Sequence record: MG655269.1 | Reading direction: 5' to 3' (one strand) | Length of the DNA: 64,000 nt | Shown here: positions 1,380 to 54,299 of the stretch, one piece after another | Layout of the letters: each line of letters opens with the position of its first letter | Numbering within the stretch: position 1 is the stretch's first letter | Notes under the pieces: model-generated | Told to the model about the DNA's origin: nothing | Database searches by the model: none | What the model saw: only the letters and a program-made list of their open reading frames with translations | Made by a program: the position numbers and the translations under genes

Positions 1380-1410
1380 GGCCAGGGGTAATTCCCTGGC
1401 CTTATTACCG
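1380..1410 (+). terminator. Hairpin GGCCAGGG-GTAATT-CCCTGGCC followed by TTATTACCG
   Basis: Perfect 8-bp stem immediately after the beta' stop codon; variant of the recurrent hairpin+TTATG element. Confidence 0.7.
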
Positions 1411-1424
1411 ACGGGATATTTTTT

Positions 1425-2072
1425 ATGGATAATTTGCTTGAAAGGGGACGGTTTCTTCTTGAGAACACTGCAGCCGCCATGAACCCTTATCCTTACACGA
1501 TCATTTTCGTCACCACCCCAATGGATTGGGATGCCGTGGTCACTGCCATGCATGCTAACGATCCTGCAGCAAACATCATTAAACATAAAGGACAGTTCAC
1601 GACCCGGCGCGATTACCAATATGTCATTTATCGAGATGAACATTGGTATATCGCTGGTGCGAATATGAGAAGCCTGCCTTACAACCATTACCATACCGGT
1701 GCGATGCTCGGCATTGCCATGGACCTGGGGCATGAAATCATTATCGATATCAGCAATCGCATCGGGAATGATGCGACTGCAGCTCCGGCGATAACGGCGA
1801 TCATGCACGATTGGTTTATGGTCAACTGGCGCGAAGCTGTATGCGTGACCCATGAGAACTACCTGGCATTTATTCCGGACGATGATTACTTGTACTTGAG
1901 TAACAACAAAAAAATACTCAGGCAAGTGATTCGCGCACAAGAACAACTGGGATCGCCCTTGGCATTGACGTCGGCGTTACAGCGTGAGTGTCAGCGCCTG
2001 ATGAACACCCAGGTGATGATCGAGCCCACTGGTTGGAACGCCACTACGTACTACAGCGGAGGTGAGGTATGA
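1425..2072 (+). CDS. Hypothetical protein, degenerate member of a tandem HExxH paralog family
   Basis: Shares IIFVT..DWDAVV, KHKGQF and C-terminal TGWNATTYY with the next two ORFs, but lacks an intact HExxH. Confidence 0.7.
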   Translation: MDNLLERGRFLLENTAAAMNPYPYTIIFVTTPMDWDAVVTAMHANDPAANIIKHKGQFTTRRDYQYVIYRDEHWYIAGANMRSLPYNHYHTGAMLGIAMDLGHEIIIDISNRIGNDATAAPAITAIMHDWFMVNWREAVCVTHENYLAFIPDDDYLYLSNNKKILRQVIRAQEQLGSPLALTSALQRECQRLMNTQVMIEPTGWNATTYYSGGEV

Positions 2073-2740
2073 CGTTTGCTGAAGCTGAACAGTATATTTA
2101 CAGTCTCAGTCAAGACGGCGGGGTCTATAAACAAGAGTTCATCTTTGTGTTTGATCCCGAGTCGTGGGATAAGGTGAACCTAGCGCTGGATATCCTGGAC
2201 AATAACCGTGGGATCTGGGTGAAGAACGTCGGAGAGTTCAAAACCGCTGGTATGACGACCTACGGACCGGTGTCGGGAAGGCTTAAAGGGTATGTTGTTA
2301 TTGCTGTCCATTTCATGGGCGAACGTAAACTGTTCAATCCAGGGTATCTGCAGCATGTGTTGAATACCGCGACCCATGAGTTGGTCCACGCTGCTCAGTT
2401 CGCTGTTCGGGCGCAGAGCTACCATGATCCATTGATTGCTGTAGAGCCATTGGCTTACCTGACCGGCTGGCTAATGGAGAAATGGATCTATGCGGTCTGG
2501 GAGAAGTTTAAAATCACGATTGCAACAACACCCACCGGCGAGATCTCATACAACGTGTTGTTTGACATGCTGTATCGGTTTAATGACCGCCGGCTGGCAG
2601 ATCGTCTGTGTGAGCTCACCATGACACAGATTCAGAGTGCTTTAGTTAGGGAGTCGATTAACAGTCTGAATAACGTGGCAGTGGTAAACGATATCGGTTG
2701 GTCCTCGACAACGTATCTGGATGGAGTTAACAAGAAATGA
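2069..2740 (+). CDS. Putative zinc metallopeptidase-like protein (HELVH...EP.AY)
   Basis: THELVHAAQ motif plus downstream EPLAYL; 4-nt overlap with neighbours (translational coupling). Confidence 0.65.
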   Translation: MTFAEAEQYIYSLSQDGGVYKQEFIFVFDPESWDKVNLALDILDNNRGIWVKNVGEFKTAGMTTYGPVSGRLKGYVVIAVHFMGERKLFNPGYLQHVLNTATHELVHAAQFAVRAQSYHDPLIAVEPLAYLTGWLMEKWIYAVWEKFKITIATTPTGEISYNVLFDMLYRFNDRRLADRLCELTMTQIQSALVRESINSLNNVAVVNDIGWSSTTYLDGVNKK

Positions 2741-3363
2741 AGATGCCGGTCAGTCAGTATGTAGATAAGTTTCTATTAAGGCTGTTCCCTTATCCGCGGC
2801 AGTTTATCTTTGTCACCAGTGTTGCGGATTTTGATGCGGTGGTTACCGAACTGGCACGTCGGCAGACTGCGGCTGGGATTAGCAATAAATGGCTGAGTCA
2901 CAGAGGGCATTTCAAAGGGAATGGGATTTGTGCTTCGGGGAATCAGATCTGTGTATTAGGTGCGCTTTATGATACCGGCACGCAGATCAGTCCGGCTAAC
3001 ATCGCCGGGACGATCGGTACCATGCAGCATGAAATCCAACACATGTTACTGCATACCTGTGCACAGATTGGTTATAACCCGATGCGCGAACACGAACCGT
3101 TTACGTATTTAACGAAGTGGGTGTTTGAGTTGTTCCTGGCGTTTATGCGTAATTACCACGGCGTGATGATCACCGATGTGCAGCGGCAAGATACTGGTAT
3201 GCTGAGTCGGTTGCAGAAGGGAGGGGCTTTTGAGTTACTGCACGCCCTGCCCGTTGAAAATGTTCGAGATTCATTAGCAAGAGAATCTCGTGCATTATTA
3301 AACAACGCGGTGGTCGTCAGTCCTATTGGTGCATCCCGTTCCACAACCTATTTCGAATTATAA
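2737..3363 (+). CDS. Putative zinc metallopeptidase-like protein (HEIQH...EP.TY), paralog of the preceding genes
   Basis: QHEIQHML plus EPFTYL; C-terminal IGASRSTTYF matches the paralogs. Confidence 0.65.
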   Translation: MKMPVSQYVDKFLLRLFPYPRQFIFVTSVADFDAVVTELARRQTAAGISNKWLSHRGHFKGNGICASGNQICVLGALYDTGTQISPANIAGTIGTMQHEIQHMLLHTCAQIGYNPMREHEPFTYLTKWVFELFLAFMRNYHGVMITDVQRQDTGMLSRLQKGGAFELLHALPVENVRDSLARESRALLNNAVVVSPIGASRSTTYFEL

Positions 3364-3369
3364 TTAACC

Positions 3370-3395
3370 CGACCAGGGAAACCTGGTCGTTATGC
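3370..3395 (+). terminator. Hairpin CGACCAGG-GAAA-CCTGGTCG followed by TTATGC
   Basis: Perfect 8-bp stem with GAAA tetraloop after the paralog triad. Confidence 0.75.
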
Positions 3396-3412
3396 TAATT
3401 AAGGAGGTAAGT

Positions 3413-4114
3413 ATGGGTATGTATACCGGCGTCTCATTTCGTTTGAAGGTCAGAAAAAATGCACCCTTGCCGGTGTTAGAGTTCATGGATAAGTTCTTCA
3501 TGGAAGGTGAAACACTGCAAGCAGTGAAAGACCTACAGAAAGAAACGGGTATCCAGTTCCAGTCCACAGCCATTGCATTACCGGGTGATCAGTTTCATTA
3601 CAGTGAAATTGCCGATATGGTCATGATGGTTCGCGGGCACTCTTCCAGTTTTGAAAGCTGGTACTGGCGTGTTAAAGAAGATAAGGGCGATTACTGGTTG
3701 TATGAAACCCGCGCCAATACCAAACGCCCTCACCATGACCTGGCCGCCAACCTTATCCAGGCATTATTACCATGTCTGGTTATCGAAGAAGGTGAGGTGG
3801 TGCTGCGCTCCATTTATGAAGACAGCGCCCAAGAACGCGTTCTGGCATTGGTAAATGGCAAGATTATTGAGGAACGTGGTTATGAGTACGAGGATGAATA
3901 CAATAGCCCGTGGAATGAAAAGGCGCCGATAGATTATGTCAAGGGTGATTTTGGTGCAATTGCACATATCCGCATCACCGAGGAAGAAGAGTTCACACCA
4001 CCTTGGACCTTACAGGAACTGCGGGCCGGTGAAGAAAAAGCACGGTTAGAGAAAGAAGCCGAGCACGAACGGATACGGGCAGAGGGCGGTGGTTTCGGTT
4101 TCGGTGGTTGGTAG
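3413..4114 (+). CDS. Conserved phage hypothetical protein
   Basis: Strong SD AAGGAGG before ATG 3413; MGMYT start typical of a widespread phage family (recall). Confidence 0.75.
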   Translation: MGMYTGVSFRLKVRKNAPLPVLEFMDKFFMEGETLQAVKDLQKETGIQFQSTAIALPGDQFHYSEIADMVMMVRGHSSSFESWYWRVKEDKGDYWLYETRANTKRPHHDLAANLIQALLPCLVIEEGEVVLRSIYEDSAQERVLALVNGKIIEERGYEYEDEYNSPWNEKAPIDYVKGDFGAIAHIRITEEEEFTPPWTLQELRAGEEKARLEKEAEHERIRAEGGGFGFGGW

Positions 4115-4142
4115 TTTTAATTAATTTAACCTGAGGTGCATT

Positions 4143-5171
4143 ATGAAACGTTTGGACGAACCAGAATTCTTGAAAGGTGAACTTAAGAATATCACCTATG
4201 TGGCCGGCACTAAAAAGATCGGCTGGCTTGATAAACTCAATCGTGCACTAACTGAAAATAAAGGGAAGGTAACGCCGTATAAGTTTTTGCGGGCCCGCGA
4301 TCTACACGATGCGTTTAAAGACGCGAAATTCAGTACCAAAGAACAGAGTGAATTTCATAAACTGGTCTCTGATCCGGTGCAGGGAGACTTTTGGGTATCA
4401 AGTATGTTGATGCTGTGGTTATGGTCAATCAACCGCGTGGTGTACCGCCTTCCCGTTGAATTGTTTGCAGCCGCTAACCAGAATTATGATGTGGGTAACG
4501 TTCCTATCGAAACCCTTACCCGTATGCCGCAGTGGACTACGTGTATCGCAATGGACTGGGAAGGCATTGCAATAGATAAAGACGGGCATTGTCAGCGCGG
4601 TCTCTTTTACAGTCTACAAATGCTCAACGGGAAAGAGTATCTGCAGATAGAGTTGTATGTCACGTTCCATCGCAGTGAATCAGGCACTGTTAAGTTTGGG
4701 TCGTATACCCTGCTTATTGATACTTCCAAGACAAATGTCAGAGAAGGTATGGAGCAGGCACTGATTGATATCCCCAAATATCAAAACATGGGGATGTCTT
4801 CAAGTGTTCGTATCGGGCTTGATGAATCTGAAGATATGCTTAGCGATATTATCACTGCGATCTCGCTGGTTAACGGTGAACACCGAAAATCAGAACTGGG
4901 CAAGACGGATATCAAATGGCCAGGCTACCAAATTCAAGGTACGTCAGGCTACAAGATCCGCCCGCGTTTGAAAGCAGTAGAGTTCATGGTGGGTGAAGAA
5001 TACGTTCCACAGTTACGTGCGGCTGGCATCTCTAACGAGCGTTCACAACGTAAGAGTCATATTCGTTGTGGTCACTGGCACACGTACTGGTTAGGTCCTC
5101 GTAGCGGTCCACGTACGCAAGAGCGGTACTGGCTAATGCCAATTGTTGTTTCTGGTAAAGCACCAGAATAA
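4143..5171 (+). CDS. acrVA2: AcrVA2/FinQ-family protein
   Basis: C-terminal SHIRCGHWHTYWLG...W.MPIVVSG matches the AcrVA2 HIRRGHWHGYWQG...WQPAVFVNSG motif; W...VYRL and P...L.RMPQW motifs present; 342 aa; SD GAGG. Confidence 0.8.
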   Translation: MKRLDEPEFLKGELKNITYVAGTKKIGWLDKLNRALTENKGKVTPYKFLRARDLHDAFKDAKFSTKEQSEFHKLVSDPVQGDFWVSSMLMLWLWSINRVVYRLPVELFAAANQNYDVGNVPIETLTRMPQWTTCIAMDWEGIAIDKDGHCQRGLFYSLQMLNGKEYLQIELYVTFHRSESGTVKFGSYTLLIDTSKTNVREGMEQALIDIPKYQNMGMSSSVRIGLDESEDMLSDIITAISLVNGEHRKSELGKTDIKWPGYQIQGTSGYKIRPRLKAVEFMVGEEYVPQLRAAGISNERSQRKSHIRCGHWHTYWLGPRSGPRTQERYWLMPIVVSGKAPE

Positions 5172-5194
5172 TCCAATTTAAATAAGGGTAGTTT

Positions 5195-5896
5195 ATGAAC
5201 GGTATGAAGATGATGATTGGTTCCCTGCCACTGAGCAGCATGATGGGTGGTAGTCGTTCAGACGCGGGGACTTTCAATCCTGCAGCGCACGCTGCCCCTT
5301 TCCGTGCAGTTGGCGAGTACATCGCGGATGCAGCGTTTGAAGATCGTGGGGTATTGGTTTCTGCAGACGGGATCGTTGCTACTGTGCGAGCCAAAAAGGT
5401 GACCTTCCAGGAAGCCGCAGATGCCCGCGGTGCAGCCACTGGACTGTATGCCATTATGTTCCCAGTCACTAACGGGGCGAAAGACGATACTGTCGTGATC
5501 ACCACTACCAGTCAGGCTGTGTTGTTTAACTTACTGGCAGTTGAAGATCTCCCTGATGAACTGTTTGTGCAGTTTGGCCTGGCAACGAATGCCGCGACGG
5601 TGAAAGCCATGACCAATGACAACAACGACCATATCCGGGTACTGGCCAATGCCGGCGGTATCGCCCCAAGCAATACTTCTCCGTCCCATTTGATTGTGGA
5701 CAAGCAGCGCAATCTGATCATTGGTCATATTGTAAAAGAAGGTGATGATCAAGCAGACTTCAGTATCTTCGCCGCCTCACGTAAATCCAAATCATCACAG
5801 GACTACATTATCAACGTGAGTACCGATGATAGTGATATCATCAAGCATATCGTCCAAGCTACAGTGGAAGAGATTGCACTGGGAGACGCGGTCTAG
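5195..5896 (+). CDS. Hypothetical protein
   Basis: 233-aa ORF in operon orientation with phage-like codon use. Confidence 0.7.
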   Translation: MNGMKMMIGSLPLSSMMGGSRSDAGTFNPAAHAAPFRAVGEYIADAAFEDRGVLVSADGIVATVRAKKVTFQEAADARGAATGLYAIMFPVTNGAKDDTVVITTTSQAVLFNLLAVEDLPDELFVQFGLATNAATVKAMTNDNNDHIRVLANAGGIAPSNTSPSHLIVDKQRNLIIGHIVKEGDDQADFSIFAASRKSKSSQDYIINVSTDDSDIIKHIVQATVEEIALGDAV

Positions 5897-5953
5897 TCTG
5901 TAATTGCAGACAAAACCGGCGGATGATATAGCACCAGAAATTAAGAGGTAACT

Positions 5954-6766
5954 ATGGTGGTAAGAGGTCAAGGCGGTATTGAGAAGGGACACAAATACGG
6001 TCGTCTTACTGCCGTACGTTTTATAGGTAAAAATAAAAATTACATGGCTAACTGGGAGTGGTTATGTGATTGCGGTAAGACTATTCAGGTCTATGCCGGG
6101 GATGTTAAATGCGGGCACACTACATCTTGCGGGTGTTATGTTAGAGAAATGATGGCTGATAAACAAACCACTCATGGCTTAAGCAAGACTCGGGAATACA
6201 AGATATGGGCAGGGATGATAAAACGCTGCACGAATGCTAATGTCGAAAACTATCACCTGTACGGCGGTAGGGGTATTAAGGTTTGTGAGAAGTGGGCTTC
6301 TTCATTTGAAGAGTTTCATAAGGACATGGGTTTTGCACCGAGCAAACAACACAGCATCGAGCGTATCGATGGTGATGGTAATTACGAACCTGGTAATTGT
6401 AAGTGGGCAACGAGTGCAGAACAAAGTGCTAACCGTAATAATAACCGCTGGGTTGAATATAAAGGCGAGCAGAGATTACTCTGTCATGTTGTCGCTGAAA
6501 TAGATACCCATGCAACAACTGTTTATTATTGGACGGATAAGGGGCTCACGGCTGATGAAATAGAAACCGTTGTAAACAGCACCCTTAAGAAAGGATTCAG
6601 GTTCTATGCACCTAGTGTAACTCATGTTGTCCTAAAGGCAACTGATTCATTAGCAGCAGTAATGGGAAAAGACTTTCATGTTGTTGTGAACAGCAGTCAT
6701 GATCAACACGGTAACGTAGTGTCTAAAGTCGTTCACGGGCATGTCAGGAAAATTAACCAGGAGTAG
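5954..6766 (+). CDS. HNH-family homing endonuclease (free-standing)
   Basis: YGRLT...CDCG...SCGC, HG..KTREY.IW..M..RC...YGGRGI.VC..W, SIERIDGDGNYEPGNCKWAT; relatively AT-rich. Confidence 0.88.
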   Translation: MVVRGQGGIEKGHKYGRLTAVRFIGKNKNYMANWEWLCDCGKTIQVYAGDVKCGHTTSCGCYVREMMADKQTTHGLSKTREYKIWAGMIKRCTNANVENYHLYGGRGIKVCEKWASSFEEFHKDMGFAPSKQHSIERIDGDGNYEPGNCKWATSAEQSANRNNNRWVEYKGEQRLLCHVVAEIDTHATTVYYWTDKGLTADEIETVVNSTLKKGFRFYAPSVTHVVLKATDSLAAVMGKDFHVVVNSSHDQHGNVVSKVVHGHVRKINQE

Positions 6767-6770
6767 AGTA

Positions 6771-7418
6771 ATGAGTGTAATGACCGGTGGATTTGGTGCT
6801 ATTAACGCGTTAATGTCGAACGGCAGACCGACGCAAGGAGCACTTGAGTATTTTAACAATCAGTATCAGGGCATGCTGCAAGCAGCGCAGCAGGTGGGTA
6901 GTGTAGCGATGCAGCAGATCTATCAGATCGCAACACACACCTATGAAAACCTGATGCAGACCCGTCCGTGGGAACTGGCAGAAGCAGCGTTGCGTCAAAC
7001 AGTGCACATGTTTGACCCGAACACGGTTCGTCAGCTTCTCAACCTGGCTGATATGCAAACCGCCAAACCGATCATGCAGCGGTGGGTGATGGCGCAACCG
7101 GATATCCGTCAGATGTATCATCAGCAGCGTATCGATGGTTACAGCGAAACGTATGAAGATGCCCAACCAGGGATGGTAGGTGCAGACCATTATGATTATC
7201 GTCGTGCAGCAAACGGCATGTTGCAGTTTGCACACACTGAAGAGGTGCCGATGGCGTCTTGGCAGGCGACGACCTATTATGAGCGTCTGGTAGAAGGTGA
7301 TAACGAACTGTCGTTCCATGAGAAGCGTGACATCCATGTAACCTGGGATGCGTGTCTGAATCTGATGAACACACAGGCGTATGATCCGACCTCCATCTTC
7401 AACATGAAGCTGGCGTAA
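6771..7418 (+). CDS. Conserved Chimalliviridae core protein (possibly phiKZ gp59/Imp3-like by position)
   Basis: MQRWVMAQP.IR.MY..QRIDGYSETY...HYDYRR motif recalled from phiKZ-like phages; SD GGAG before ATG 6771. Confidence 0.6.
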   Translation: MSVMTGGFGAINALMSNGRPTQGALEYFNNQYQGMLQAAQQVGSVAMQQIYQIATHTYENLMQTRPWELAEAALRQTVHMFDPNTVRQLLNLADMQTAKPIMQRWVMAQPDIRQMYHQQRIDGYSETYEDAQPGMVGADHYDYRRAANGMLQFAHTEEVPMASWQATTYYERLVEGDNELSFHEKRDIHVTWDACLNLMNTQAYDPTSIFNMKLA

Positions 7419-7426
7419 GTTAATCG

Positions 7427-7454
7427 GAGGAGGGGCAGCCCTCCTCTTATGCCG
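7427..7454 (+). terminator. Hairpin GAGGAGGG-GCAG-CCCTCCTC followed by TTATGCCG
   Basis: Perfect 8-bp stem after the 7418 stop; full consensus tail. Confidence 0.75.
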
Positions 7455-7487
7455 TTTGGGGGTAGCATGGCAAAAAAGGAACTCACG

Positions 7488-7691
7488 ATGAAGCGACTTC
7501 AGATAGACATCTCTGAACAGGGCTTTAGCAAACTCAATGCACTCAAGGTGAAAATGGAAACCACTGCCATGGGTAGCGTTGTCAGCCGCGCCTTATCGAT
7601 TACCGATCGTTTGTTCACCGCCAAGGAGAAAGGCAGTAAGATCCTGATCGTGGATAAAGATGGTAATGTCACCGAAATCGAATTACTGTAG
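7488..7691 (+). CDS. Ribbon-helix-helix (CopG-like) small DNA-binding protein
   Basis: KRLQIDIS beta-strand followed by two helices (LNALK, VVSRAL); AAGGA SD before ATG 7488 (alternative start 7467). Confidence 0.6.
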   Translation: MKRLQIDISEQGFSKLNALKVKMETTAMGSVVSRALSITDRLFTAKEKGSKILIVDKDGNVTEIELL

Positions 7692-7699
7692 AGGTTAAC

Positions 7700-7927
7700 A
7701 TGGCTTGGTCCAAACGCCGTGCAAAGAAACGCATCATTCACTTACGTGGTTTTCATTATCGTGTTCAATCACGTAGTATCGCAATCTGGGAACAGTATCG
7801 CGAATATCATCAAAATCGACCATTTGGATCTGGCGTTGGTTTATTGATGTTACTTGACCCTGAAACTGGTTGTCCAATAGGAGCTCATCGTGGCCTTAAG
7901 CAAAACAAAAATAAAGCGTCGTACTAA
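7700..7927 (+). CDS. Small basic hypothetical protein
   Basis: SD GAGG; K/R-rich N-terminus MAWSKRRAKKR. Confidence 0.6.
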   Translation: MAWSKRRAKKRIIHLRGFHYRVQSRSIAIWEQYREYHQNRPFGSGVGLLMLLDPETGCPIGAHRGLKQNKNKASY

Positions 7928-8174
7928 TGCGCTGTATAACTACAAAACGCTGGTTGAACGCATTAGCTATAAATGCATGATAGCCCACATCGATGCTCAG
8001 GGTATCAAGCTTGAATTGAACCGCACGGGTTCGTCAATTAAAAGTGAAGACATTCCTGCTGCAAAAGAAGCCCGTCTTGCATTGAAACGCGAAATCGTCC
8101 GTCTGCGGAATATCCAGGGGCGTCGTCGTATCGTGAATGCCGGTAAGATCAAAGCGGCAATCAGCCAGTATTAA
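7890..8174 (+). CDS. Small basic hypothetical protein
   Basis: GTG start with GGAG SD; overlaps the previous ORF by 38 nt; similar N-terminus MALSKTKIKRR. Confidence 0.6.
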   Translation: MALSKTKIKRRTNALYNYKTLVERISYKCMIAHIDAQGIKLELNRTGSSIKSEDIPAAKEARLALKREIVRLRNIQGRRRIVNAGKIKAAISQY

Positions 8175-8177
8175 TAG

Positions 8178-8207
8178 AAGGGACTTCGGTCCCTTTATTT
8201 TTTTTTG
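8178..8207 (+). terminator. Intrinsic terminator AAGGGAC-TTCG-GTCCCTT with T-tract
   Basis: UUCG tetraloop and long T run. Confidence 0.9.
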
Positions 8208-8234
8208 TCTTGAATAATGAAATTTTTACGCTGT

Positions 8235-8267
8235 AGAAAATCTTAGACCTATATAACGGCACTGATA
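8235..8267 (+). promoter_or_regulatory. Putative early (virion RNAP) promoter AGAAAATCTTAGACCTATAT-N8-TGATA
   Basis: Near-identical copies at 8841 and 31160; TATAT core resembles the phiKZ early consensus TATATTAC. Confidence 0.75.
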
Positions 8268-8297
8268 GAGTAATCTAAATTAACTTACGAGGTTATC

Positions 8298-8828
8298 ATG
8301 AAAAACACTACTTTTCTAATTGAGACCCTGAAACGTACCTTGGAAGAGCTGGACCAGGCAACGTTATCAACTGAAGAAAAAATTGAATTAACCACCATGG
8401 TTGAGAAAGAACATTTTGCTAAGCTGTTCGGTGTCCGCGCAGAAGAAACCACTCAGTTAAGTGAGCGCGATTTCTCTAAACTGACCGGTTATCAGTACAA
8501 CAGTGTTTACGCGGGGTTAGATTTGGTTGGTAATTTTGACTGGGTGATCACGGCGGATGGCGCAGTCGTAACAAGAGAAATGCCTCATCACGGCAGTAAC
8601 CATTGGTTGCCACCGCACAGGCAATTTATATTCAGACTGATCGATGAAGGTCGTGAAATATTTAATGAAGGCACTAGACTGCTTGTTATCAGAATTGAGA
8701 ACACCATCACCAAAGAGGTCTTTTCAATTAACTTTGAAGTTGCTGATATTCAAATCGGCAGTGCGGTTGTTAAAATGGTTGAGCGTTATCTGTTCGATTA
8801 TTACAGGGTCAGCGTCAAGAAACTGTAA
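8298..8828 (+). CDS. Hypothetical protein (putative early gene)
   Basis: SD GAGG; directly downstream of the promoter motif. Confidence 0.75.
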   Translation: MKNTTFLIETLKRTLEELDQATLSTEEKIELTTMVEKEHFAKLFGVRAEETTQLSERDFSKLTGYQYNSVYAGLDLVGNFDWVITADGAVVTREMPHHGSNHWLPPHRQFIFRLIDEGREIFNEGTRLLVIRIENTITKEVFSINFEVADIQIGSAVVKMVERYLFDYYRVSVKKL

Positions 8829-8840
8829 AATATGAGTTGC

Positions 8841-8873
8841 AGAAAATCTCAGACCTATATGACTGGGGTGATA
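8841..8873 (+). promoter_or_regulatory. Putative early promoter AGAAAATCTCAGACCTATAT-N8-TGATA
   Basis: 19 of 20 positions identical to the 8235 copy, with the same N8-TGATA spacing. Confidence 0.75.
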
Positions 8874-8931
8874 AAGAGTAGTGAATACTCTTAACCCCTA
8901 ACCCAATTAACCTTAAGTATGGAGTAGTATC

Positions 8932-9222
8932 ATGACTGTAACTTTCTCTCAGCAAATGCAGGTTGTCGAATCTATCGCTGTGATGCAGGAAAAAGCAATG
9001 GAACTGCAAGTTGCTACCAAAGCGTGTTACGACGAAGTCACCCGACTGGCCAACCGACTGGCTGACATCAACGATCCACTCGGCTTTCAGAAAGCCTATG
9101 AAGAATATCGTGCCAAGCTGGCAGAAGCGGATGTATTAGCCGATGCTACTCGCCTGGCTTACAACATGTCAGACGCTGCACTGAAAACCATCCTGGGTGA
9201 AGCTAACCCAACCTTTCATTAA
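8932..9222 (+). CDS. Small coiled-coil hypothetical protein (putative early gene)
   Basis: SD GGAG; helical A/E/K/Q-rich sequence. Confidence 0.7.
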   Translation: MTVTFSQQMQVVESIAVMQEKAMELQVATKACYDEVTRLANRLADINDPLGFQKAYEEYRAKLAEADVLADATRLAYNMSDAALKTILGEANPTFH

Positions 9223-9261
9223 TAGTTAATTACTCATCGTCATTACGCCTCGGAGAAACTC

Positions 9262-9471
9262 ATGAGCGATTTTATTAGCAACCTGTTCGAAATCGCTATT
9301 GCAGTTTCTTCTGTAGTGGCGATGGTTAAATTGATTAAATCTGATAATGCCTATATTGCAGAAACAGTTCGTATCATCGATGCCTGCGCTTCTTTACAGG
9401 AAGGGCAAGTAATTCAGGGCGAAGTGGTTAACACCAAAGCCCACACAACCAACTTATACATCACCCATTAA
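9262..9471 (+). CDS. Small membrane-associated hypothetical protein
   Basis: SD GGAG; hydrophobic N-terminal segment LFEIAIAVSSVVAMVKLI. Confidence 0.6.
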   Translation: MSDFISNLFEIAIAVSSVVAMVKLIKSDNAYIAETVRIIDACASLQEGQVIQGEVVNTKAHTTNLYITH

Positions 9472-9493
9472 TCTACTTGTAAGGAATACACCT

Positions 9494-9955
9494 ATGTCAA
9501 ACTCTATGTTCATCTGCCTGTCACTGTTAGCGGTTATCTCTGTCTCTGGTGGTATCGCCTTTGCCAAGAGCCTGTCACCGACCCATGCCATGATGACCGC
9601 CTTTGCTTACTTACGTGAGCAACTCGGTGATGACGCAGCACAGTACGAATACGATAAACGCTCACACCTTCTTTGCATGACAAACCTGGTGGAAACTAAC
9701 TATGCCCTGGTCTGCGGTAAGCACTTTGAACGCGCAGAACAAAAACGTGCATGGTTAGTTAAGGAAGCAGAAGAGATCCAGCTCACCCCGCGTCAACAAC
9801 TGATGCTGCTGGACTCCTTACTGAACCTGAACACCCGTCCTGAACAAGCAAAGAAAATTGTTAAAGTACGTTCAACCAAAGAGATCGTTGACTTGGCTGC
9901 GCAGTATGCGAGCGACAACCGTCGTATCGAAGCTCCGCTGGCCTTGTTCCGCTAA
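9494..9955 (+). CDS. Hypothetical protein with N-terminal signal or TM segment
   Basis: SD AAGGA; FICLSLLAVISVSGGIAFA hydrophobic leader. Confidence 0.7.
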   Translation: MSNSMFICLSLLAVISVSGGIAFAKSLSPTHAMMTAFAYLREQLGDDAAQYEYDKRSHLLCMTNLVETNYALVCGKHFERAEQKRAWLVKEAEEIQLTPRQQLMLLDSLLNLNTRPEQAKKIVKVRSTKEIVDLAAQYASDNRRIEAPLALFR

Positions 9956-9989
9956 TGTAAGCTGTAGTGTATTGGTCACCTCATGACCG

Positions 9990-10024
9990 GAGCTCACCCT
10001 AACCGGTGGGCTCTTTTTTTTTTT
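9990..10024 (+). terminator. Intrinsic terminator GAGCTCACC-loop-GGTGGGCTC with T-tract
   Basis: 9-bp stem followed by a long T run. Confidence 0.88.
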
Positions 10025-10081
10025 GTCTTCTTTTTTTTTGTTCGGGGATTATATGTAGTCCATATTAGCTAAGAGGACATT

Positions 10082-10486
10082 ATGGCAGAGCGTGTAGTTC
10101 CAACCATGTCCGTAACCGGGTACGTAACCGGCGTGACTGAAACCATTGACCGGATGTTTGCCTACTGGCTGACCGCACAATACTCTCAAACGTATCTTGC
10201 TCGCGGTAACATTCACTCCCTTCAATATTTGATCCAGCAGTATGACGGTAACCCAGAACGTCTGTGTGATGCGGTGGTGAAAGACCTCAAGAACTATTTT
10301 ACGGGTCCGTTTGATGCCGCCACGGTTACCTGTAATCCACGTTATGCGACCAGTGAGCGTGATGAGAAGTTCTATATGCTGGAGATCGATATCAAAGTCT
10401 CTAATGGCGATATCGGTTATGATGTTGGTCGCCGTCTGCTAGAGATTGAAGACGGTATCTTTAAACGCATTGTAGGTACTCTGTAA
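10082..10486 (+). CDS. Conserved jumbo-phage protein, possibly gp25-like baseplate/virion protein
   Basis: VPTMS..GYV....SQ...GNIHSLQ pattern recalled from phiKZ-like core genes; SD GAGG. Confidence 0.5.
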   Translation: MAERVVPTMSVTGYVTGVTETIDRMFAYWLTAQYSQTYLARGNIHSLQYLIQQYDGNPERLCDAVVKDLKNYFTGPFDAATVTCNPRYATSERDEKFYMLEIDIKVSNGDIGYDVGRRLLEIEDGIFKRIVGTL

Positions 10487-11088
10487 TGGCACAAACCGAA
10501 CACGATAAAATGATGCACCAGCGGGCAGGGTCGATTGAGCGTCGACTGGCACAGGCCGCCCAGCATGAACGTAATCCCCAAATCCAGGAAGCGGAGTTCA
10601 CACGGGTATTCCTGCCGATGTTTGTTGGCGGGGGCGAATACATTAATCAGGATGCTTGGGTAGCGGTTGCCGGTTCTGTTAATAATGAAGTCGATGTCTT
10701 CCGCGGGCAAGAGTATCTTTATACCCTGCCAGCCTTAGCCATCCCGATTCGCTCTGAGATCTCCAGTCGTAGCCAGAATGGTCGCATGGGTGATAACTGG
10801 ATGGGCACAGGCTTAAACGCCGCAGACGATCCAGGCTCAATTGAGAGCGTGATGTCGATCGATGCCAAGGGCAAACAGGTTGCGTTAGCCAGTACTGCTG
10901 AGGAGCACATGGCACGCTGGGATGAGGTGTTCAAACGTTACGGGCTGGACTACCGCGTAATCCGTGCTGACCTCCATGAACGTAAAACAGGTCAGAAAGT
11001 TAATCCCAACATTATCGATCAATCAGATAAGGCATTAGCGACTAAACAGGTTGAGCTCGATGACAACGGTGATTACGAAGACTACTAA
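10486..11088 (+). CDS. Conserved jumbo-phage hypothetical protein
   Basis: Coupled TAATG overlap; E..F...FLPMF and W..VAGS..NEVDV motifs. Confidence 0.7.
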   Translation: MAQTEHDKMMHQRAGSIERRLAQAAQHERNPQIQEAEFTRVFLPMFVGGGEYINQDAWVAVAGSVNNEVDVFRGQEYLYTLPALAIPIRSEISSRSQNGRMGDNWMGTGLNAADDPGSIESVMSIDAKGKQVALASTAEEHMARWDEVFKRYGLDYRVIRADLHERKTGQKVNPNIIDQSDKALATKQVELDDNGDYEDY

Positions 11089-12205
11089 AAAACCTGGCAT
11101 GGTACGGATTATTCAGACAGGCGATATTCACCTCTGTCATAAGCGCACCCCAACGGCGAACATTATCCGTACACTGAACTATATCTTTTATGAAAACGAA
11201 TCCTTGGCTGAAACTGACCTTATCATCCTTGCCGGGGATGTCTGGGATACTTTGGTAACCATGCCTAATGACGATGCATTATTAGCTCGTCAATGGATTC
11301 GTAAGTTTGTCGAAGATTGCGCATACCACAATGTGATCTTAGATGTGTTAGAAGGCACTCCTGATCATGATTGGGAGCAGTCTTCTGAATTCACCCTCTT
11401 TGAAACCAATTGTGAAGTGCGCTACATCAAAACCCTGCAGATTGTCCGTCATGAGCACTTGGATTTAAATATCCTTTATGTGCCCGATGAATGGCGCCCA
11501 ACCATCGAAGCGATCTGGGAAGATGTGTGTGTGGCGATGACTGGAGCTGGACTGGATAAGGTGGATGTCGCAGTGGTGCACGGGGGATTTGATTTTAACT
11601 TCCCGCCGGAGTACAACATCAAAGGCCACAGCGCTGAGCGCTTTAGTAGCATTGTCAAACATGCGGTGTTTGCTAACCACATCCACAAAGCCCAAAGCTT
11701 TATGAAAGTGCACGGTCCAGGTTCACCGGATCGATTAGCACAGGGTGAGGAAGGGGACAAAGGTTACCATCGGGTGGTGATTGATCAGAAGACCGATCAG
11801 ATGCGCATCCAGTGGATTAAGAACCCACATGCCTGGACCCATATCGCACTCAACGTTGCGGGTATGTCAGTTGAGGAGATCGTCGCCAAAGCCAAAGCGA
11901 TCGCAGCACCACTAAGAGCCGGCAGTTATCTGCGTTTTGATAACGGTGATCCCTTAGTGGTGAAAGCGGTACTGTGGGCATTGAAAGCAGAAATCCCGCA
12001 TGTGATCTTGGAATACAAAAACAAGAAGCAAGCAGGGATCACGCAAACGCACCAAACTTATGCCAAGAAGTTTTCTGGCACCCACATTAACCGCAACAAT
12101 GCCAAAGAGTCGATCGTCGGCTGGTTGCAGGGTAAGGGGTTAACGGACGACTCACAGGGTCAGTATTTAAGTGATATCTTACAGCGCGCCATGGCGCTGA
12201 AGTAG
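11060..12205 (+). CDS. sbcD: SbcD/Mre11-like metallophosphoesterase nuclease
   Basis: GDIH, GDVWD, GTPDHD, VHG and NHIH motifs; start at 11060 or 11099. Confidence 0.88.
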   Translation: MTTVITKTTKKPGMVRIIQTGDIHLCHKRTPTANIIRTLNYIFYENESLAETDLIILAGDVWDTLVTMPNDDALLARQWIRKFVEDCAYHNVILDVLEGTPDHDWEQSSEFTLFETNCEVRYIKTLQIVRHEHLDLNILYVPDEWRPTIEAIWEDVCVAMTGAGLDKVDVAVVHGGFDFNFPPEYNIKGHSAERFSSIVKHAVFANHIHKAQSFMKVHGPGSPDRLAQGEEGDKGYHRVVIDQKTDQMRIQWIKNPHAWTHIALNVAGMSVEEIVAKAKAIAAPLRAGSYLRFDNGDPLVVKAVLWALKAEIPHVILEYKNKKQAGITQTHQTYAKKFSGTHINRNNAKESIVGWLQGKGLTDDSQGQYLSDILQRAMALK

Positions 12206-12215
12206 TGAGGGTGTT

Positions 12216-13016: not shown

Positions 13017-13079
13017 ATCAACATAACTGCTCTAACTTTATAGAGCAGTATAACTAATTAGTCCTAAAAGGAGCAACAC

Positions 13080-13850: not shown

Positions 13851-13902
13851 ATAGACAGGACGATGAATTCAGCATAAGTCATTGTCTGGGTTCATCCACA
13901 AC

Positions 13903-13933
13903 AGAGGAGGGTGAAAACCCTCCTCTTGTGCCG
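13903..13933 (+). terminator. Hairpin AGAGGAGGGT-GAAA-ACCCTCCTCT followed by TGTGCCG
   Basis: Perfect 10-bp stem with GAAA loop; variant tail. Confidence 0.75.
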
Positions 13934-14251
13934 TCCACGGACTGGGCTATAGCTCACGCTTACTCCCCAGGGTATGGGCGATTTAAACGCCGACATTTCA
14001 GGAAGAATACGCGCAAGCGACCCCCACGGCCATGTAAGAATAAAAGTAAGTTGATGAAGGTGGCTCAGAGTAAGTTGGGTTATGCGATCATGACAGGCAG
14101 GGTAATCAGGCAGGCGGTATGTGATGAGTGTGAGGCGGATGAACGTATCGAACCTTTGCAAGTCAATTATGCTAAGCCGTATATCGTGCTGTGGCTTTGT
14201 CCACGTTGTCATGCTGACTGGTACCTGACAAATGAGCCGGCGTACAGCTGA
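13928..14251 (+). CDS. Small HNH-like Zn-binding protein
   Basis: CDEC...NYAKP..V.WLCPRCH pattern of short phage HNH-like proteins; start uncertain. Confidence 0.5.
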   Translation: MPSTDWAIAHAYSPGYGRFKRRHFRKNTRKRPPRPCKNKSKLMKVAQSKLGYAIMTGRVIRQAVCDECEADERIEPLQVNYAKPYIVLWLCPRCHADWYLTNEPAYS

Positions 14252-14288
14252 GGGTTTCGGCCCTCCTTTATGAGACCAAGAGGTGACA

Positions 14289-14681: not shown

Positions 14682-14689
14682 TTTTTATT

Positions 14690-14725
14690 GCTGGATGCGG
14701 TAAACCCGCTCCAGCCCTTATGCCG
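14690..14725 (+). terminator. Hairpin GCTGGA(T)GCGG-TAAAC-CCGCTCCAGC followed by CCTTATGCCG
   Basis: Bulged 10-bp stem with consensus tail. Confidence 0.7.
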
Positions 14726-14776
14726 CCTGTAATATCGTACATTATTCTACTATCTATTAGAGGAACAAATAATCTT

Positions 14777-14800
14777 AAATATTTACAAGCCTACATTATC
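14777..14800 (+). promoter_or_regulatory. Putative phage promoter (AAGCCTACATTAT)
   Basis: CCTAYATNAY core shared with 8235, 8841, 19931, 31160 and 38830; AT-rich upstream region. Confidence 0.5.
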
Positions 14801-14858
14801 AACATGTCATAGCAGTATGTGATTTAACCTACCGTGTGATCACCGGGAGCAGCCACCA

Positions 14859-16403: not shown

Positions 16404-16438
16404 CTTAATTTAATCTACACCGTTAGGAGTCACCCAAG

Positions 16439-17956: not shown

Positions 17957-17970
17957 GGAAAAGATAAACC

Positions 17971-19515: not shown

Positions 19516-19529
19516 TCTATAAATCTGAT

Positions 19530-19558
19530 CGGCATAAGGAGAGGCTACGGCCTCTCCT
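19530..19558 (-). terminator. Hairpin AGGAGAGGC/GCCTCTCCT with TTATGCCG on the minus strand, at a convergent junction
   Basis: CGGCATAA directly abuts a 9-bp stem between two convergent genes. Confidence 0.8.
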
Positions 19559-25638: not shown

Positions 25639-25672
25639 AAGACCAGGGGGCTTACTCCTTGGTCTTTTATGC
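25639..25672 (+). terminator. Hairpin AAGACCAGGGGG-CTTA-CTCCTTGGTCTT followed by TTATGC
   Basis: 12-bp stem with G-U pairs after the helicase stop. Confidence 0.7.
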
Positions 25673-25709
25673 TTTCTTTCCTTTTCTTTTTGTTAAGGAT
25701 ACACAGCTT

Positions 25710-30450: not shown

Positions 30451-30661
30451 AGTTAACATCGAGCAGGCCAATCGTTATGAGGGGTCTACCGATGATTTGG
30501 TCCAGCAAGCTAATGATCGTGGTTTTCTCCAGGGGATTCGTATCACTTCTGGTGAGAACATCGATCCAAGCATTTGGACGCCTGAGAAGATCGAAAAGTT
30601 GAAAGCTGCACTTCGACATATTCGTGACTCAGAACAACGCATCAAAGGTAGCCAGGGGTAA
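30431..30661 (+). CDS. Small hypothetical protein
   Basis: GTG at 30431 with GAGGG SD, in frame with track ORF 30389-30661. Confidence 0.55.
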   Translation: MDTNPTEVNIEQANRYEGSTDDLVQQANDRGFLQGIRITSGENIDPSIWTPEKIEKLKAALRHIRDSEQRIKGSQG

Positions 30662-30679
30662 CACCCTGGCTTTATGCCG
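30651..30679 (+). terminator. Hairpin GCCAGGG-GTAACA-CCCTGGC followed by TTTATGCCG
   Basis: Nearly identical to the hairpin at 1380; consensus tail. Confidence 0.75.
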
Positions 30680-30699
30680 GTTTAACGAGGACGTGTAAC

Positions 30700-32394: not shown

Positions 32395-32428
32395 AGGCAG
32401 GGGGACTACTCTCTGCCTTTATTTTTTG
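32395..32428 (+). terminator. Intrinsic terminator AGGCAGGGGG-ACTA-CTCTCTGCCT with TTATTTTTT
   Basis: 10-bp stem with G-U pairs and a T-tract. Confidence 0.85.
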
Positions 32429-33473: not shown

Positions 33474-33525
33474 CGGCATATAGGCCCTCCGTAATGGAGG
33501 GCCTTTTATGACATCTTTTTTTTTG
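33474..33525. terminator. Bidirectional hairpin AGGCCCTCC-GTAAT-GGAGGGCCT flanked by CGGCATAT and TTTATGAC
   Basis: Perfect 9-bp stem at a convergent junction with motif-like flanks on both sides. Confidence 0.8.
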
Positions 33526-40382: not shown

Positions 40383-40387
40383 ACCCC

Positions 40388-40415
40388 AGGAGAGCTTCGG
40401 CTCTCCTTTTATGCC
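40388..40415 (+). terminator. Hairpin AGGAGAGC-TTCG-GCTCTCCT followed by TTTATGCC
   Basis: Perfect 8-bp stem, UUCG loop, consensus tail. Confidence 0.8.
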
Positions 40416-40431
40416 CATTAAGGAACATGTC

Positions 40432-45588: not shown

Positions 45589-45603
45589 TTGATCATTTGA
45601 TCA

Positions 45604-45650
45604 GCATAAGGAGAGGCCTCGCGCCTCTCCTGTTTATGCCGCCTTTTTTT
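45604..45650. terminator. Bidirectional hairpin AGGAGAGGC-CTCGC-GCCTCTCCT flanked by GCATAA and TTTATGCCG plus T-tract
   Basis: Convergent junction; motif present on both strands. Confidence 0.85.
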
Positions 45651-45651
45651 T

Positions 45652-46155
45652 TTACACTAAAATGCCGTTAAAAGCCACCGGGTCATTACCCAGGAATGGG
45701 TTGTACCGAACCACGGACCCTAATGTGTAATCGTAATAAATGAAATCCAAGCATTGCGCACCCTGGTAGGTAGTCCATGACTTTGATAGATAACCATTGC
45801 GATCTAACGCAACGTAAGCTGGACGACTCGATAACGGGGTAAACTTCATCAACACTTGTGGCTGGTTGTTGAGGTTGTTTGTAAATACAGGCAGGGAAGG
45901 ATGAGCATGCCTTGCAATGGAGCACAACCAAGAGTCGTAGGTAAACCACTCTTTATACGGTGTGCCGTACATGTTGTTGGATGTGTTCAATGTAGTATTA
46001 ACATATTTACCGGCAGTAGCAGACATACTGGTACTTGCGTTCGCTACCTTTGTATATTTAGCGGTATTAGCTGTAAGCCACTCCTGGAATTGCGCATAGG
46101 TCATCTTAGTACCTATCTGTGGCTGTGACTTACTGCCCATTAACATCTCTAACAT
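45652..46155 (-). CDS. Hypothetical protein, paralog of 46168-46677 (possible tail-fibre-associated)
   Basis: MLEMLM start; WL..NT.KY, MYGTPY, IARHA.P, LNRNGY.S and LDFIYYD motifs shared with the neighbour. Confidence 0.78.
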   Translation of the reverse strand: MLEMLMGSKSQPQIGTKMTYAQFQEWLTANTAKYTKVANASTSMSATAGKYVNTTLNTSNNMYGTPYKEWFTYDSWLCSIARHAHPSLPVFTNNLNNQPQVLMKFTPLSSRPAYVALDRNGYLSKSWTTYQGAQCLDFIYYDYTLGSVVRYNPFLGNDPVAFNGILV

Positions 46156-46748: not shown

Positions 46749-46778
46749 CGGCATAACGGAGCAGGCAACGCCTACTCC
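46749..46778 (-). terminator. Hairpin GGAG.AGGC/GCCT.CTCC with TTATGCCG on the minus strand
   Basis: CGGCATAA two bases from the stem; downstream of the minus gene ending at 46819. Confidence 0.65.
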
Positions 46779-47853: not shown

Positions 47854-47897
47854 CGGCATAAGGGAGTGGATACCCTGACCGTAGCCAAGGTATCCAC
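47854..47897 (-). terminator. Hairpin GTGGATACC/GGTATCCAC with CTTATGCCG on the minus strand
   Basis: 9-bp perfect stem just after the DNA polymerase stop, with CGGCATAAG four bases beyond the stem. Confidence 0.7.
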
Positions 47898-52979: not shown

Positions 52980-52988
52980 GGAAATCGC

Positions 52989-54245
52989 ATGGAATCCACA
53001 TTACTTCAAACGATCAATGAAACCACGGAGTTGTGTGACTCTTTGATTTCGTTGTCACAACGTCTTGAGATGTTGGGTCCCATTGCTGCTGAATCCGTTA
53101 ACTTCGCAAAGATCCATGAATCGATTAACCTGAAGGTGGCGAAGATTGCCGCTTCGATGGAGTCGATTGAAGCTAACGGCATCAACCAGGAGGCAGTGTT
53201 AGAAATCAATACTGCCATGCCTGGTATCATTCCCAACACCATCCCTCTTAATGGATACACCAAAGCCCGCAGTCAGATGAATGTGGGGTTTGCCTTAGAG
53301 TCGTTGGAGTCAGGTAAAGCAGCAATGATCTCCGGTTCAGTAACAGGGATCGTGGCCGTGATCGTCAAACTGTTTCGTTGGGTTGTCATGACCATCAAGC
53401 AGTATGTCAAATCACGCCGTGATGCGAACCGTCTCGGTGTCTCTGTGACACAAGCACTGCAACGCGCGGGAACGATCAACGAATACCTGTTAGAGCAGTT
53501 GGCGAAAACCCCTGAAGCCAAAGCCGCTCGTCCGGGCTTTGAATGGCTGGTATCGATCTGGCGTCCGCAGGCTGGGATCTTTAAGTTCAATGAAGATGCA
53601 CTGGTGCAGTGGTGGCCAGAACTCGTCAATGAACTGGAGTACGAATACAACCAGATCAGCAAGGCGTTTGAAACCCTGCGTAGCGGTGGGTCGTTTGTCC
53701 CGAACATTGCGAAAGCGCATCAGTCTCCCTCCATGAAGCGTTTCTTTGAAGCCTTACCGCAAGGGACGGATCGTCAAGGGAACATCGTTGAGGTAGAGCT
53801 GGCGAAGAAGCAGTTTCAGGAGAACCCACAGCGTGCGTTGTTCCAGCTGGCTGAGCGTCTGCGCTACATGATCATGCGCGAGCCTAAATCAAAAGGTACT
53901 GACTTTGGGCAAGAGCTGATCTCAGTAGGTCGCAGTATTGAAGCTTACACCAATGTGGATCGTCTGGTGTTTGATCAGCTGAATACCTACGACACCAACA
54001 ACCGATTAGGGAAACTGGAAGAGGCGTTTGGTGCGTTGTATAAGCAAGTCCAAGCCACACGCTACACTGCAGACAAAGCCCTGGTTGATGAGTTCGTGGG
54101 TTACCTGAACCGTTATTCAGAAAAGCTTAACTGTTTCGTGCAACTGATCACCATTGTGAGTTACCTGGATAGCTGTAGTTTCCAGATCCTTGACAATGTA
54201 TCCAAAGCCACCATGAAGTACGTTGATATTGCTGCCAGTAATTAA
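52989..54245 (+). CDS. Internal head (ejection) protein, paralog of the previous gene
   Basis: GY T...S......ALE-S; multiple AXE/SXE sites in the N-terminal propeptide. Confidence 0.7.
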   Translation: MESTLLQTINETTELCDSLISLSQRLEMLGPIAAESVNFAKIHESINLKVAKIAASMESIEANGINQEAVLEINTAMPGIIPNTIPLNGYTKARSQMNVGFALESLESGKAAMISGSVTGIVAVIVKLFRWVVMTIKQYVKSRRDANRLGVSVTQALQRAGTINEYLLEQLAKTPEAKAARPGFEWLVSIWRPQAGIFKFNEDALVQWWPELVNELEYEYNQISKAFETLRSGGSFVPNIAKAHQSPSMKRFFEALPQGTDRQGNIVEVELAKKQFQENPQRALFQLAERLRYMIMREPKSKGTDFGQELISVGRSIEAYTNVDRLVFDQLNTYDTNNRLGKLEEAFGALYKQVQATRYTADKALVDEFVGYLNRYSEKLNCFVQLITIVSYLDSCSFQILDNVSKATMKYVDIAASN

Positions 54246-54247
54246 AT

Positions 54248-54299
54248 CGGCATAAAGGCCTGGCCCTCCGCAAGGAAGGCCAGAGCCTTACTTATGCCG
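54248..54299. terminator. Long bidirectional hairpin CGGCATAA...GCAA loop...TTATGCCG
   Basis: Nested inverted repeats (CGGCATAA/TTATGCCG, AAGGC/GCCTT, CTGGCC/GGCCAG) at a convergent junction; the right arm contains the minus-gene stop codon. Confidence 0.82.

Follow-up and report, generated by a model that had tools for sequence, protein, structure and literature searches.

What is the function of a GC-rich hairpin that recurs at the ends of genes and is followed by the short tail TTATGCCG, or a close variant of it, rather than by a long run of uridines? The question is raised by a 64,000-nucleotide stretch of sequence record MG655269.1 (hereafter the window), which is 100% identical to bases 186001-250000 of Erwinia phage vB_EamM_MadMel (MadMel). 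This phage belongs to the genus Agricanvirus (RAY/Ea35-70 group), within the phiKZ-like, nucleus-forming jumbo phages (Chimalliviridae). The window contains 75 annotated genes, including a DNA polymerase and several RNA polymerase (RNAP) beta/beta' fragments; such fragments are annotated elsewhere in the genome as well, consistent with a phage that has both a virion and a non-virion multisubunit RNAP (the latter abbreviated nvRNAP). A preliminary description, based on the sequence alone, had listed these hairpins and considered them as terminators read by one phage RNAP, as a processing or export tag, or as a terminator fused to a promoter. The analysis reported here indicates that the element is very probably an intrinsic transcription terminator, of a kind typical of phiKZ-like (Chimalliviridae) jumbo phages.

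A hairpin with a fixed tail

The recurrence of a GC hairpin followed by TTATGCCG at gene ends is confirmed as a real and strongly selected signal. All the previously listed sites are present, at or within a few bases of the positions first given for them, and this includes the looser variants at 1380 (TTATTACCG), 13903 (TGTGCCG) and 14250 (TTTATGAG) (Table 1). The exact tail occurs nine times in the window against 1.75 +/- 1.27 in shuffled sequence, where none of 100 shuffles reaches nine, and each of these copies immediately follows a GC-rich hairpin, in the orientation of the gene upstream. When the 18 strand-specific elements of the window were folded and a z-score was computed for each, 17 gave values from -3.2 to -6.5, the exception being the element at 14250 (z = -1.2).

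The statistics were extended to the rest of the 275-kb MadMel genome, using a hairpin scan that was blind to the motif and ended each stem at its last G:C pair (720 GC hairpins in 275 kb). Gene context was taken from a greedy map of open reading frames (ORFs) with 316 genes against 321 annotated, so that counts by context are approximate. In the 3′ flanks of these hairpins two words show the strongest enrichment, TTATGC (49 vs 1.0 expected) and TTATGCCG (31 vs 0.3). Among intergenic 7-mers TTATGCC and TATGCCG are the most over-represented after T7, and 33 of the 42 genomic copies of TTATGCCG are intergenic, in a genome of which 9% is intergenic; the nine coding copies are about as many as chance would place there. 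The window shows no significant enrichment of the degenerate published pattern YTTATKYYG when this is counted by itself (13 vs 7.4); the signal resides in the specific tail adjoining a hairpin.

General-purpose searches do not recover the element. The window has no match in Rfam at the gathering score, and none of the TTATGCCG elements is listed by a scan of positions 1-20000 for sigma-70 promoters and U-tract terminators. Having no U-tract, these elements escape ordinary terminator finders: a canonical terminator has five or more U in the 8 nt that follow the stem, whereas the tail offers UUAU or UUUAU only. The earlier statement that the motif stands 'instead of a U-tract' is hence accurate for a long U-tract, but a short proximal one is kept. 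The same scan does list 8177 and 9989, with their T-run tails, while the hits that it gives at 3370 (minus strand) and 14247 are due to other T-rich bases. Sigma-70-type promoter-like sites occur in positions 1-20000 at chance level (25 vs 28.1 expected), which fits transcription independent of the host RNAP.

Anchored on TATG, the tails of 52 elements have T at position 0 in 45, C at position 5 in 49, a pyrimidine at position 6 in all, and G at position 7 in 39; position 8 is random, and there is a weak T/C bias beyond it. TATG begins 1-3 nt past the last G:C pair in 42 of them, and the tail, YTTATKYYG(T) located 0-3 nt after the stem, is that of a phiKZ-type terminator. Many hairpins that lack the full tail still start with TTAT or TTTAT, and in T-run terminators TTTAT is followed by further Ts, so the common core is best described as hairpin plus (T)TTAT, extended either by GCCG or by a T-run. 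The T-run terminators reported at 8178, 9990 and 32395 are present too, and those at 9989 and 32396 close early-promoter units. A strand bias of T-runs was considered and rejected, since runs of at least eight T split 19:3 between plus and minus strands, matching the gene-strand ratio of 269:47.

Placement relative to genes

TATG occurs in the flank of 60 intergenic hairpins. In 52 of these cases a gene in the same orientation ends upstream of the hairpin, and for 27 of the 52 no co-oriented gene lies downstream. The distance from stop codon to hairpin has a median of 11 nt (interquartile range 8-22), and that from the tail to the next start a median of 64 nt (24-105). Being close to the stop codon, and far and variably so from the next start, the element belongs to the preceding gene, in agreement with the early view of a 3′-of-gene signal that is tied to the hairpin and acts at the level of transcription or RNA.

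At the four convergent junctions of the window (19530, 33474, 45604 and 54248) a tail is found on at least one strand. At the last three, where motif-like flanks had been seen on both sides, it is found on both, which produces the arrangement CGGCATAA-hairpin-TTATGCCG. Such placement in sense 3′ of genes, together with bidirectionality at convergent pairs, is what characterizes phiKZ-type terminators. Genome-wide, the mirror CATA stands upstream of the stem at 22 of 27 convergent but only 5 of 25 tandem sites (background 3%); the mirror half thus tracks convergent transcription, and is read here as two terminators sharing one hairpin. The idea that the tail must pair with an upstream mirror was rejected, as it would apply to those 5 of 25 tandem sites only; the tail evidently needs no pairing, and in the folds it is mostly unpaired.

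A CATAA mirror is also found upstream of the stem at five co-directional junctions, one in the window (40377-40416) and four at MadMel genome positions 5419, 53553, 58516 and 274088. These resemble bidirectional terminators that have no convergent gene, and possibly guard against antisense transcripts.

Correspondence with mapped terminators

The closest counterparts are terminators that have been mapped experimentally in related phages. Oxford Nanopore Technologies (ONT)-cappable-seq of phiKZ led to 61 predicted intrinsic terminators, each a stem-loop followed by a TTAT region, with the consensus BCCYCCCCHWWDGGGRRGGBYTTATKYYGT (Putzeys et al. 2024, Microlife, PMC10914365); the tail of the element at 7427, TTATGCCGT, fits this consensus. 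phiKZ and MadMel are alike in having a GC stem-loop and then YTTATKYYG(T), in its location at gene 3′ ends, in bidirectional use at convergent pairs and in possessing two multisubunit RNAPs. They differ in that the MadMel tail is sharper (TTATGCCG, with its nearly invariant C at position 5) than that of phiKZ (K, Y, Y), and in the stem arms, which are mostly GGAGAGG/CCTCTCC in MadMel and CCYCCCC/GGGRRGG in phiKZ. Moreover, the phiKZ terminators derive from mapped RNA ends, whereas the MadMel elements are known from sequence.

In 201phi2-1, a phage of a different genus and host with the same tail, 132 termination sites are known; motif A (n=59) is described as closely similar to that of phiKZ, and the hairpin is made longer by a second motif (Microb Biotechnol 2024, PMC11512511). 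In uninfected P. chlororaphis, a two-colour reporter showed activity for eight of these terminators, and the authors interpret long stems as a means of resistance to antitermination (PMC11512511). The stem-lengthening A/B combination of 201phi2-1 may be the same as the CGGCATAA...TTATGCCG arrangement of MadMel.

The published positions of the eight validated sites were placed on NC_010821.1. All eight are on the plus strand, 8 nt past the last G:C pair, within a tail TTTATG-Y-Y-G; seven coincide with the pyrimidine directly before the conserved G, and one lies a base earlier in the register of the motif. On this mapping ...UUUAUGYY forms the end of the transcript, and synthesis stops short of the conserved G (+1). 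The motif therefore spans the final RNA:DNA hybrid plus the +1 position, which is the geometry of an intrinsic terminator, and because the G lies beyond the end of the RNA, the motif is in part read on the DNA (template) side and not in the released RNA.

Since motif, position and phage family all agree with the terminators mapped in phiKZ and 201phi2-1, and RNA 3′ ends fall inside the tail in the latter, the initial guess of a terminator was right. The basic discovery has already been published for those two phages, and the MadMel element is the Agricanvirus member of that terminator class, even if the exact strings TTATGCCG and CGGCATAA were matched in no paper of the literature searched. 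What is new is the position of the RNA 3′ end just before the conserved G in 201phi2-1, together with the different selection on stem and tail at orthologous sites and the distribution of the tail among phages, to which we now turn.

Conservation and distribution across phages

Four orthologous junctions were compared in the Erwinia phages MadMel, AH06 and pEa_SNUABM_48, Salmonella phage SA002 and Proteus phage 10, whose flanking genes are 72-81% identical across the five phages. The stems at these junctions are unrelated in sequence and length, and TTATGCCG or its mirror is retained throughout. For instance, the tail 3′ of gp288 (47854) is kept in five phages despite unrelated stems; at 33474 MadMel and AH06 differ by compensatory changes in the stem; and at 46749, where the spacer between these two phages is nearly unalignable and the stem differs, the end of the stem and the tail persist. 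Stems that vary and covary next to a fixed tail indicate that selection preserves the structure of the former and the sequence of the latter. A departure is seen in the terminator of the early nvRNAP-subunit operon, where AH06 (L013:2973-3058) has TTTTACAC and MadMel (window 25626-25709) has TTTTATGC; the T-rich tail is retained, and judging from these two sequences TATG seems dispensable in this T-rich terminator.

Enrichment of the tail after hairpins was found in phiKZ (three loci, 125 kb), 201phi2-1, PhiPA3, AH06 and Proteus phage 10, and was not found in AR9, T4 or 50 kb of E. coli K-12 sequence. The bidirectional form was also sought in IMG/VR, where it matched more than 115 loci, of which 44 enclose a strong hairpin. 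In the first 80 loci, to which the comparison of sizes was confined, contigs of at least 180 kb account for 18 of 33 hairpin-positive and 0 of 47 hairpin-less loci (p = 3e-9), and hairpin-positive loci have 4.5 further elements each against 0.8 in the others. Two of the element-bearing contigs are related to jumbo phages of Burkholderia, Ralstonia, Pseudomonas and Vibrio. The tail thus reaches phages of Erwinia, Salmonella and Proteus as well as metagenomic jumbo contigs, and is missing in the Salmonella chimallivirus SPN3US. In practice, recognition of hairpin plus TTATGCCG allows transcription units to be drawn in Agricanvirus and many phiKZ-like genomes, and can flag jumbo-phage contigs in metagenomes.

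Some of the jumbo contigs from IMG/VR (L026, L032, L056, L072, L108 and L134) have a run of about ten A between CGGCATAA and the hairpin. Read on the other strand this is a hairpin, T10, four nucleotides and then TTATGCCG, so that the T-run displaces the tail from the stem; the order in MadMel, tail and then T10, is the opposite.

A model of termination

In the proposed mechanism, a GC-rich stem-loop would form in the RNA as it is being made, and the fixed tail (Y)TTATGCCG after it would constitute the RNA:DNA hybrid of about 8 nt that remains once the hairpin has formed. The first half of the tail, UUAU or UUUAU, may act as a short proximal U-tract that is easily unwound, making the upstream half of the hybrid weak. 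Release would take place at CC, with the conserved G as the next, unincorporated base. The step from pyrimidine (-1) to G (+1) may serve as a pause, keeping the polymerase at a point 8 nt beyond the stem until the RNA can be released, and in this way replace the missing distal U-tract. At convergent pairs each strand would bear its own tail. By analogy with 201phi2-1, we infer that MadMel RNAs end within the tail. Compared with a canonical Rho-independent terminator, the element has in common the GC hairpin, a U-rich segment next to it, release 7-9 nt further on and activity with the host RNAP in a reporter, but in MadMel it has no tract of 5-8 U and instead a fixed GCCG after UUAU.

According to E. 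coli native elongating transcript sequencing (NET-seq) studies of 2014, the consensus elemental pause of bacterial RNAP is reportedly G-10, Y-1, G+1. The RNA ends of 201phi2-1 share with it a pyrimidine at the end and a G next (seven of eight sites), whereas the -10 position here falls in the 3′ arm of the stem and is rich in C. In the papers found there is no biochemical answer as to how giant-phage RNAPs terminate, and the register described above, with the RNA end at the pyrimidines and G at +1, offers a concrete model for it.

Several points weigh against this reading or against parts of it. The role given to the pyrimidine/G pause in phage RNAPs is an extrapolation from bacterial RNAP pausing. 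In principle, exonuclease trimming back to the hairpin could account for the 3′ ends seen by ONT sequencing, whose resolution is a base or two (for start sites the authors give up to 2 bp), and no transcriptome or RNA 3′-end data for Erwinia jumbo phages (Agricanvirus) were found in the literature searched. Within MadMel, some sense hairpins have neither the tail nor a T-run. SPN3US has no TTATGYYG tail after its hairpins, which are followed by T-runs (11 vs 1.3 expected), and in Goslar the tail is only weakly present, so that this polymerase family does not strictly require it.

Alternative explanations

A first alternative keeps the terminator and divides the work between the two phage enzymes: hairpins with TTATGCCG would stop the nvRNAP of middle and late transcription, and hairpins with a T-run the virion RNAP of early transcription. 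The early units on which this depends can be recognized by a promoter-like motif, CCTAYATNAY, found in the window at 8248-8257, 8854-8863, 14790-14799, 19931-19940, 31173-31182 and 38830-38839 (the one at 14790 lying downstream of the gp246 terminator at 14690..14726) and preceded at 8248, 8854 and 31173 by a GAAAA(T/A)CT(T/C)AGA box. The form CCTAYATTAC occurs 26 times genome-wide, always intergenic and on the plus strand, and the motif resembles the AT-rich early promoter that the virion RNAP uses in phiKZ. With both strands counted, T-runs and tails without a T-run stand at 11:5 in early units and 19:35 elsewhere (odds ratio 4.1, p = 0.02), but on the plus strand alone the association is not significant (odds ratio 2, p = 0.37). 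Genes on the minus strand, mostly virion genes, nearly always end with a tail lacking a T-run, and in AH06 the terminator of the early nvRNAP operon has lost TATG and kept its T-rich tail. Against this, several early units close with full-tail hairpins, e.g. at genome positions 5419, 40415 and 103904, T-run terminators mostly retain the TTTAT core, and the eight reporter-tested terminators of 201phi2-1, all of them tail-bearing, also stop the host RNAP. Terminators specific to an RNAP class are therefore weakly hinted at and on balance unlikely, and the original proposal of an element read by one phage RNAP is weakened.

One early-type promoter (MadMel genome 79598-79640; L004:29598-29640) is directly followed by a hairpin and TTTTATGCC, ahead of gp105. 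This is an element of the promoter-proximal terminator type, which the 201phi2-1 paper ties to premature termination and small RNAs.

A second alternative, also entertained in the preliminary description, is that the tail is punctuation of both kinds, its TATG doubling as the late-promoter core of the nvRNAP, so that transcription would stop at CC and could begin anew from the G two bases before it, which would provide the next gene with a 5′ end of its own. The nvRNAP of phiKZ does require TATG and starts at its G (PMC4666361), and a structure of 2026 places the non-template TATG in a pocket of the beta-lobe of phiKZ GP123 (PMC12809450). Orthologs of GP123 are present in 279 phage records. 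The MadMel ortholog of GP123 is gp2 (27-28% identity), which has 7 of the 14 pocket residues identical; gp251 was considered for this role and rejected. At several tandem junctions, furthermore, the tail stands 15-25 nt before the next start codon. Yet 27 of the 52 elements face a convergent gene, where a promoter would fire antisense, and the tail is equally well conserved there; the element is anchored to the upstream stop and its distance to the next start varies widely, which is not the phiKZ late-promoter arrangement of a TATG upstream of the gene that it drives. What follows TATG also differs. The base is C in 49/52 terminators but in only 5/45 TATGs of promoter-only regions (the 18 divergent spacers of MadMel), where T prevails (23/45; p = 4e-18), so these regions carry TATGT and not TATGCCG. 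The element and the phiKZ late promoter (PMC4666361, PMC12809450) thus share the same four non-template-strand bases, but the promoter needs no hairpin (the model late promoter P119L has none), and the element stands at gene ends even where no gene follows. The word TATG is absent from the texts of both ONT papers, and the link is not discussed there. A fusion of terminator and promoter is not needed to explain the motif, and appears rather improbable.

A related proposal, about equally improbable, is that the tail does more than serve as a weak U-tract, and that the TATG pocket in the beta-lobe of the nvRNAP brakes elongation there in a sequence-specific manner and may allow a restart at the G two bases upstream of release, a sigma-like subunit being built into the enzyme. 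If true, one protein pocket would read both 'start' and 'stop', and a hairpin with a short U-tract would be an efficient stop for the phage enzyme. The number of GP123 pocket residues identical, out of 14, is 11 in 201phi2-1, 7 in MadMel, 7 in Goslar and 5 in SPN3US. Both phosphate-binding lysines are lost in SPN3US, which is without the tail, yet Goslar equals MadMel and its tail signal is weak; the relation between pocket residues and presence of the tail is suggestive at most.

That the element might not be a terminator but a tag for RNA processing, stability or export from the nucleus, recognized by ChmC or another phage protein, is very hard to sustain. In its favour, the tail would stay at the 3′ end of the RNA, and its sequence is conserved, whereas a terminator that works through structure alone would have no need of this. 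But enhanced crosslinking and immunoprecipitation (eCLIP) of PhiPA3 ChmC placed its peaks 25-30 bp downstream of start codons and found no binding motif, leaving the suggestion of a ChmC-bound export tag unsupported; the eight tail-bearing 201phi2-1 terminators cut downstream reporter expression in uninfected cells, where phage proteins are absent; and the conserved G lies past the mapped RNA end, where it would be read on the DNA or template.

Finally, a repeated DNA element (a palindrome like repetitive extragenic palindromes or miniature inverted-repeat transposable elements) or a chance pattern with no role in transcription is scarcely credible: the stems do cluster in a few look-alike groups (GGAGAGG, GAGGAGG, CCAGGG), but they differ and covary between copies and orthologous sites while the tail alone is fixed, so that copies do not share a stem by descent, the orientation follows the upstream gene, enrichment is far above that of shuffles, and coding copies of TTATGCCG are at chance level.

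Elements of the window and neighbouring features

The individual sites are collected in Table 1.

Table 1. Hairpin elements of the window, with positions counted from its first base and z-scores of the predicted folds
Feature	Hairpin	Element	Strand	Gene context	Tail	z
Terminator	1380-1401	1380..1410	+	3′ of gp225 (RNAP beta-like)	variant TTATTACCG	-3.9
Terminator	3370-3389	3370..3397	+	3′ of gp228	TTATGCTA	-4.6
Terminator	7427-7446	7427..7455	+	3′ of gp233	TTATGCCGT	-3.2
T-run terminator		8177..8206	+	3′ of gp235	TTTAT + T-run
T-run terminator		9989..10040	+	closes early-promoter unit gp236-239
Hairpin	13903-13926	13903..13934	+	gp244/gp245 gap	variant TGTGCCGT (TGTGCCG)	-5.7
Weak hairpin, weakest member		14250..14274	+	overlaps gp245 stop codon	TTTATGAG	-1.2
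Terminator	14690-14715	14690..14726	+	3′ of gp246	CC + TTATGCCG (14718-14725)	-4.3
Hairpin	19538-19557	19529..19557	-	convergent gp249> <gp250	minus TTATGCCGA; plus-strand reading without motif (TCTTTCAGAG, then T6 run)	-4.9
Hairpin	25639-25664	25639..25700	+	closes early nvRNAP-subunit/helicase operon gp251-253	TTTATGC, then T-rich stretch	-6.5
Terminator	30651-30670	30651..30680	+	gp262 stop codon in loop	TTTATGCCGG	-4.6
T-run terminator		32396..32428	+	closes early-promoter unit gp264-265	TTTATTTTTTG
Bidirectional terminator	33483-33503	33474..33524	both	gp267> <gp268	minus TATATGCCG (33482-33474); plus TTTTATGAC, then T9 run	-5.5 on each strand
Terminator	40389-40406	40389..40416	+	3′ of gp276	TTTTATGCCC; mirror CATAA upstream	-4.2
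Bidirectional terminator	45610-45630	45602..45653	both	gp284> <gp285	plus GTTTATGCCG, then T10 run; minus TTATGCTG	-3.9 and -4.3
Terminator	46758-46778	46749..46778	-	3′ of gp287	GTTATGCCG	-4.1
Terminator	47866-47897	47854..47897	-	3′ of DNA polymerase gene gp288	CCTTATGCCG	-5.2
Bidirectional terminator	long hairpin	54248..54299	both	gp292> <gp293	CGGCATAA and TTATGCCG, a full tail on each strand	-4.2 and -4.6

The position of some elements interferes with the reading of neighbouring genes. The terminator hairpin of gp262 carries the gene's own stop codon (TAA, 30659-30661) in its loop, and the ribosome must therefore open the 5′ arm of the stem to complete the gene. The ATG contained in the tail is a trap for start-codon calling of which annotators should be warned: at 3392 it opens a mechanical ORF (3392..4114) in frame with gp229, whose annotated start is 3413, and at 7449 another (7449..7691) in frame with gp234 (annotated start 7488). 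The possibility that the tail is conserved as a start-codon context was rejected, since the stem arm resembling a Shine-Dalgarno sequence is paired and lies some 17 nt away from the ATG, and since no ORF follows at convergent sites.

The variant element at 13903 is contained in an unannotated gap of 203 nt (13851-14053) with strong predicted structure (-46.6 kcal/mol over 110 nt). This gap could encode a small RNA, or belong to a longer gp245 read from a GTG-initiated ORF that starts at 13928.

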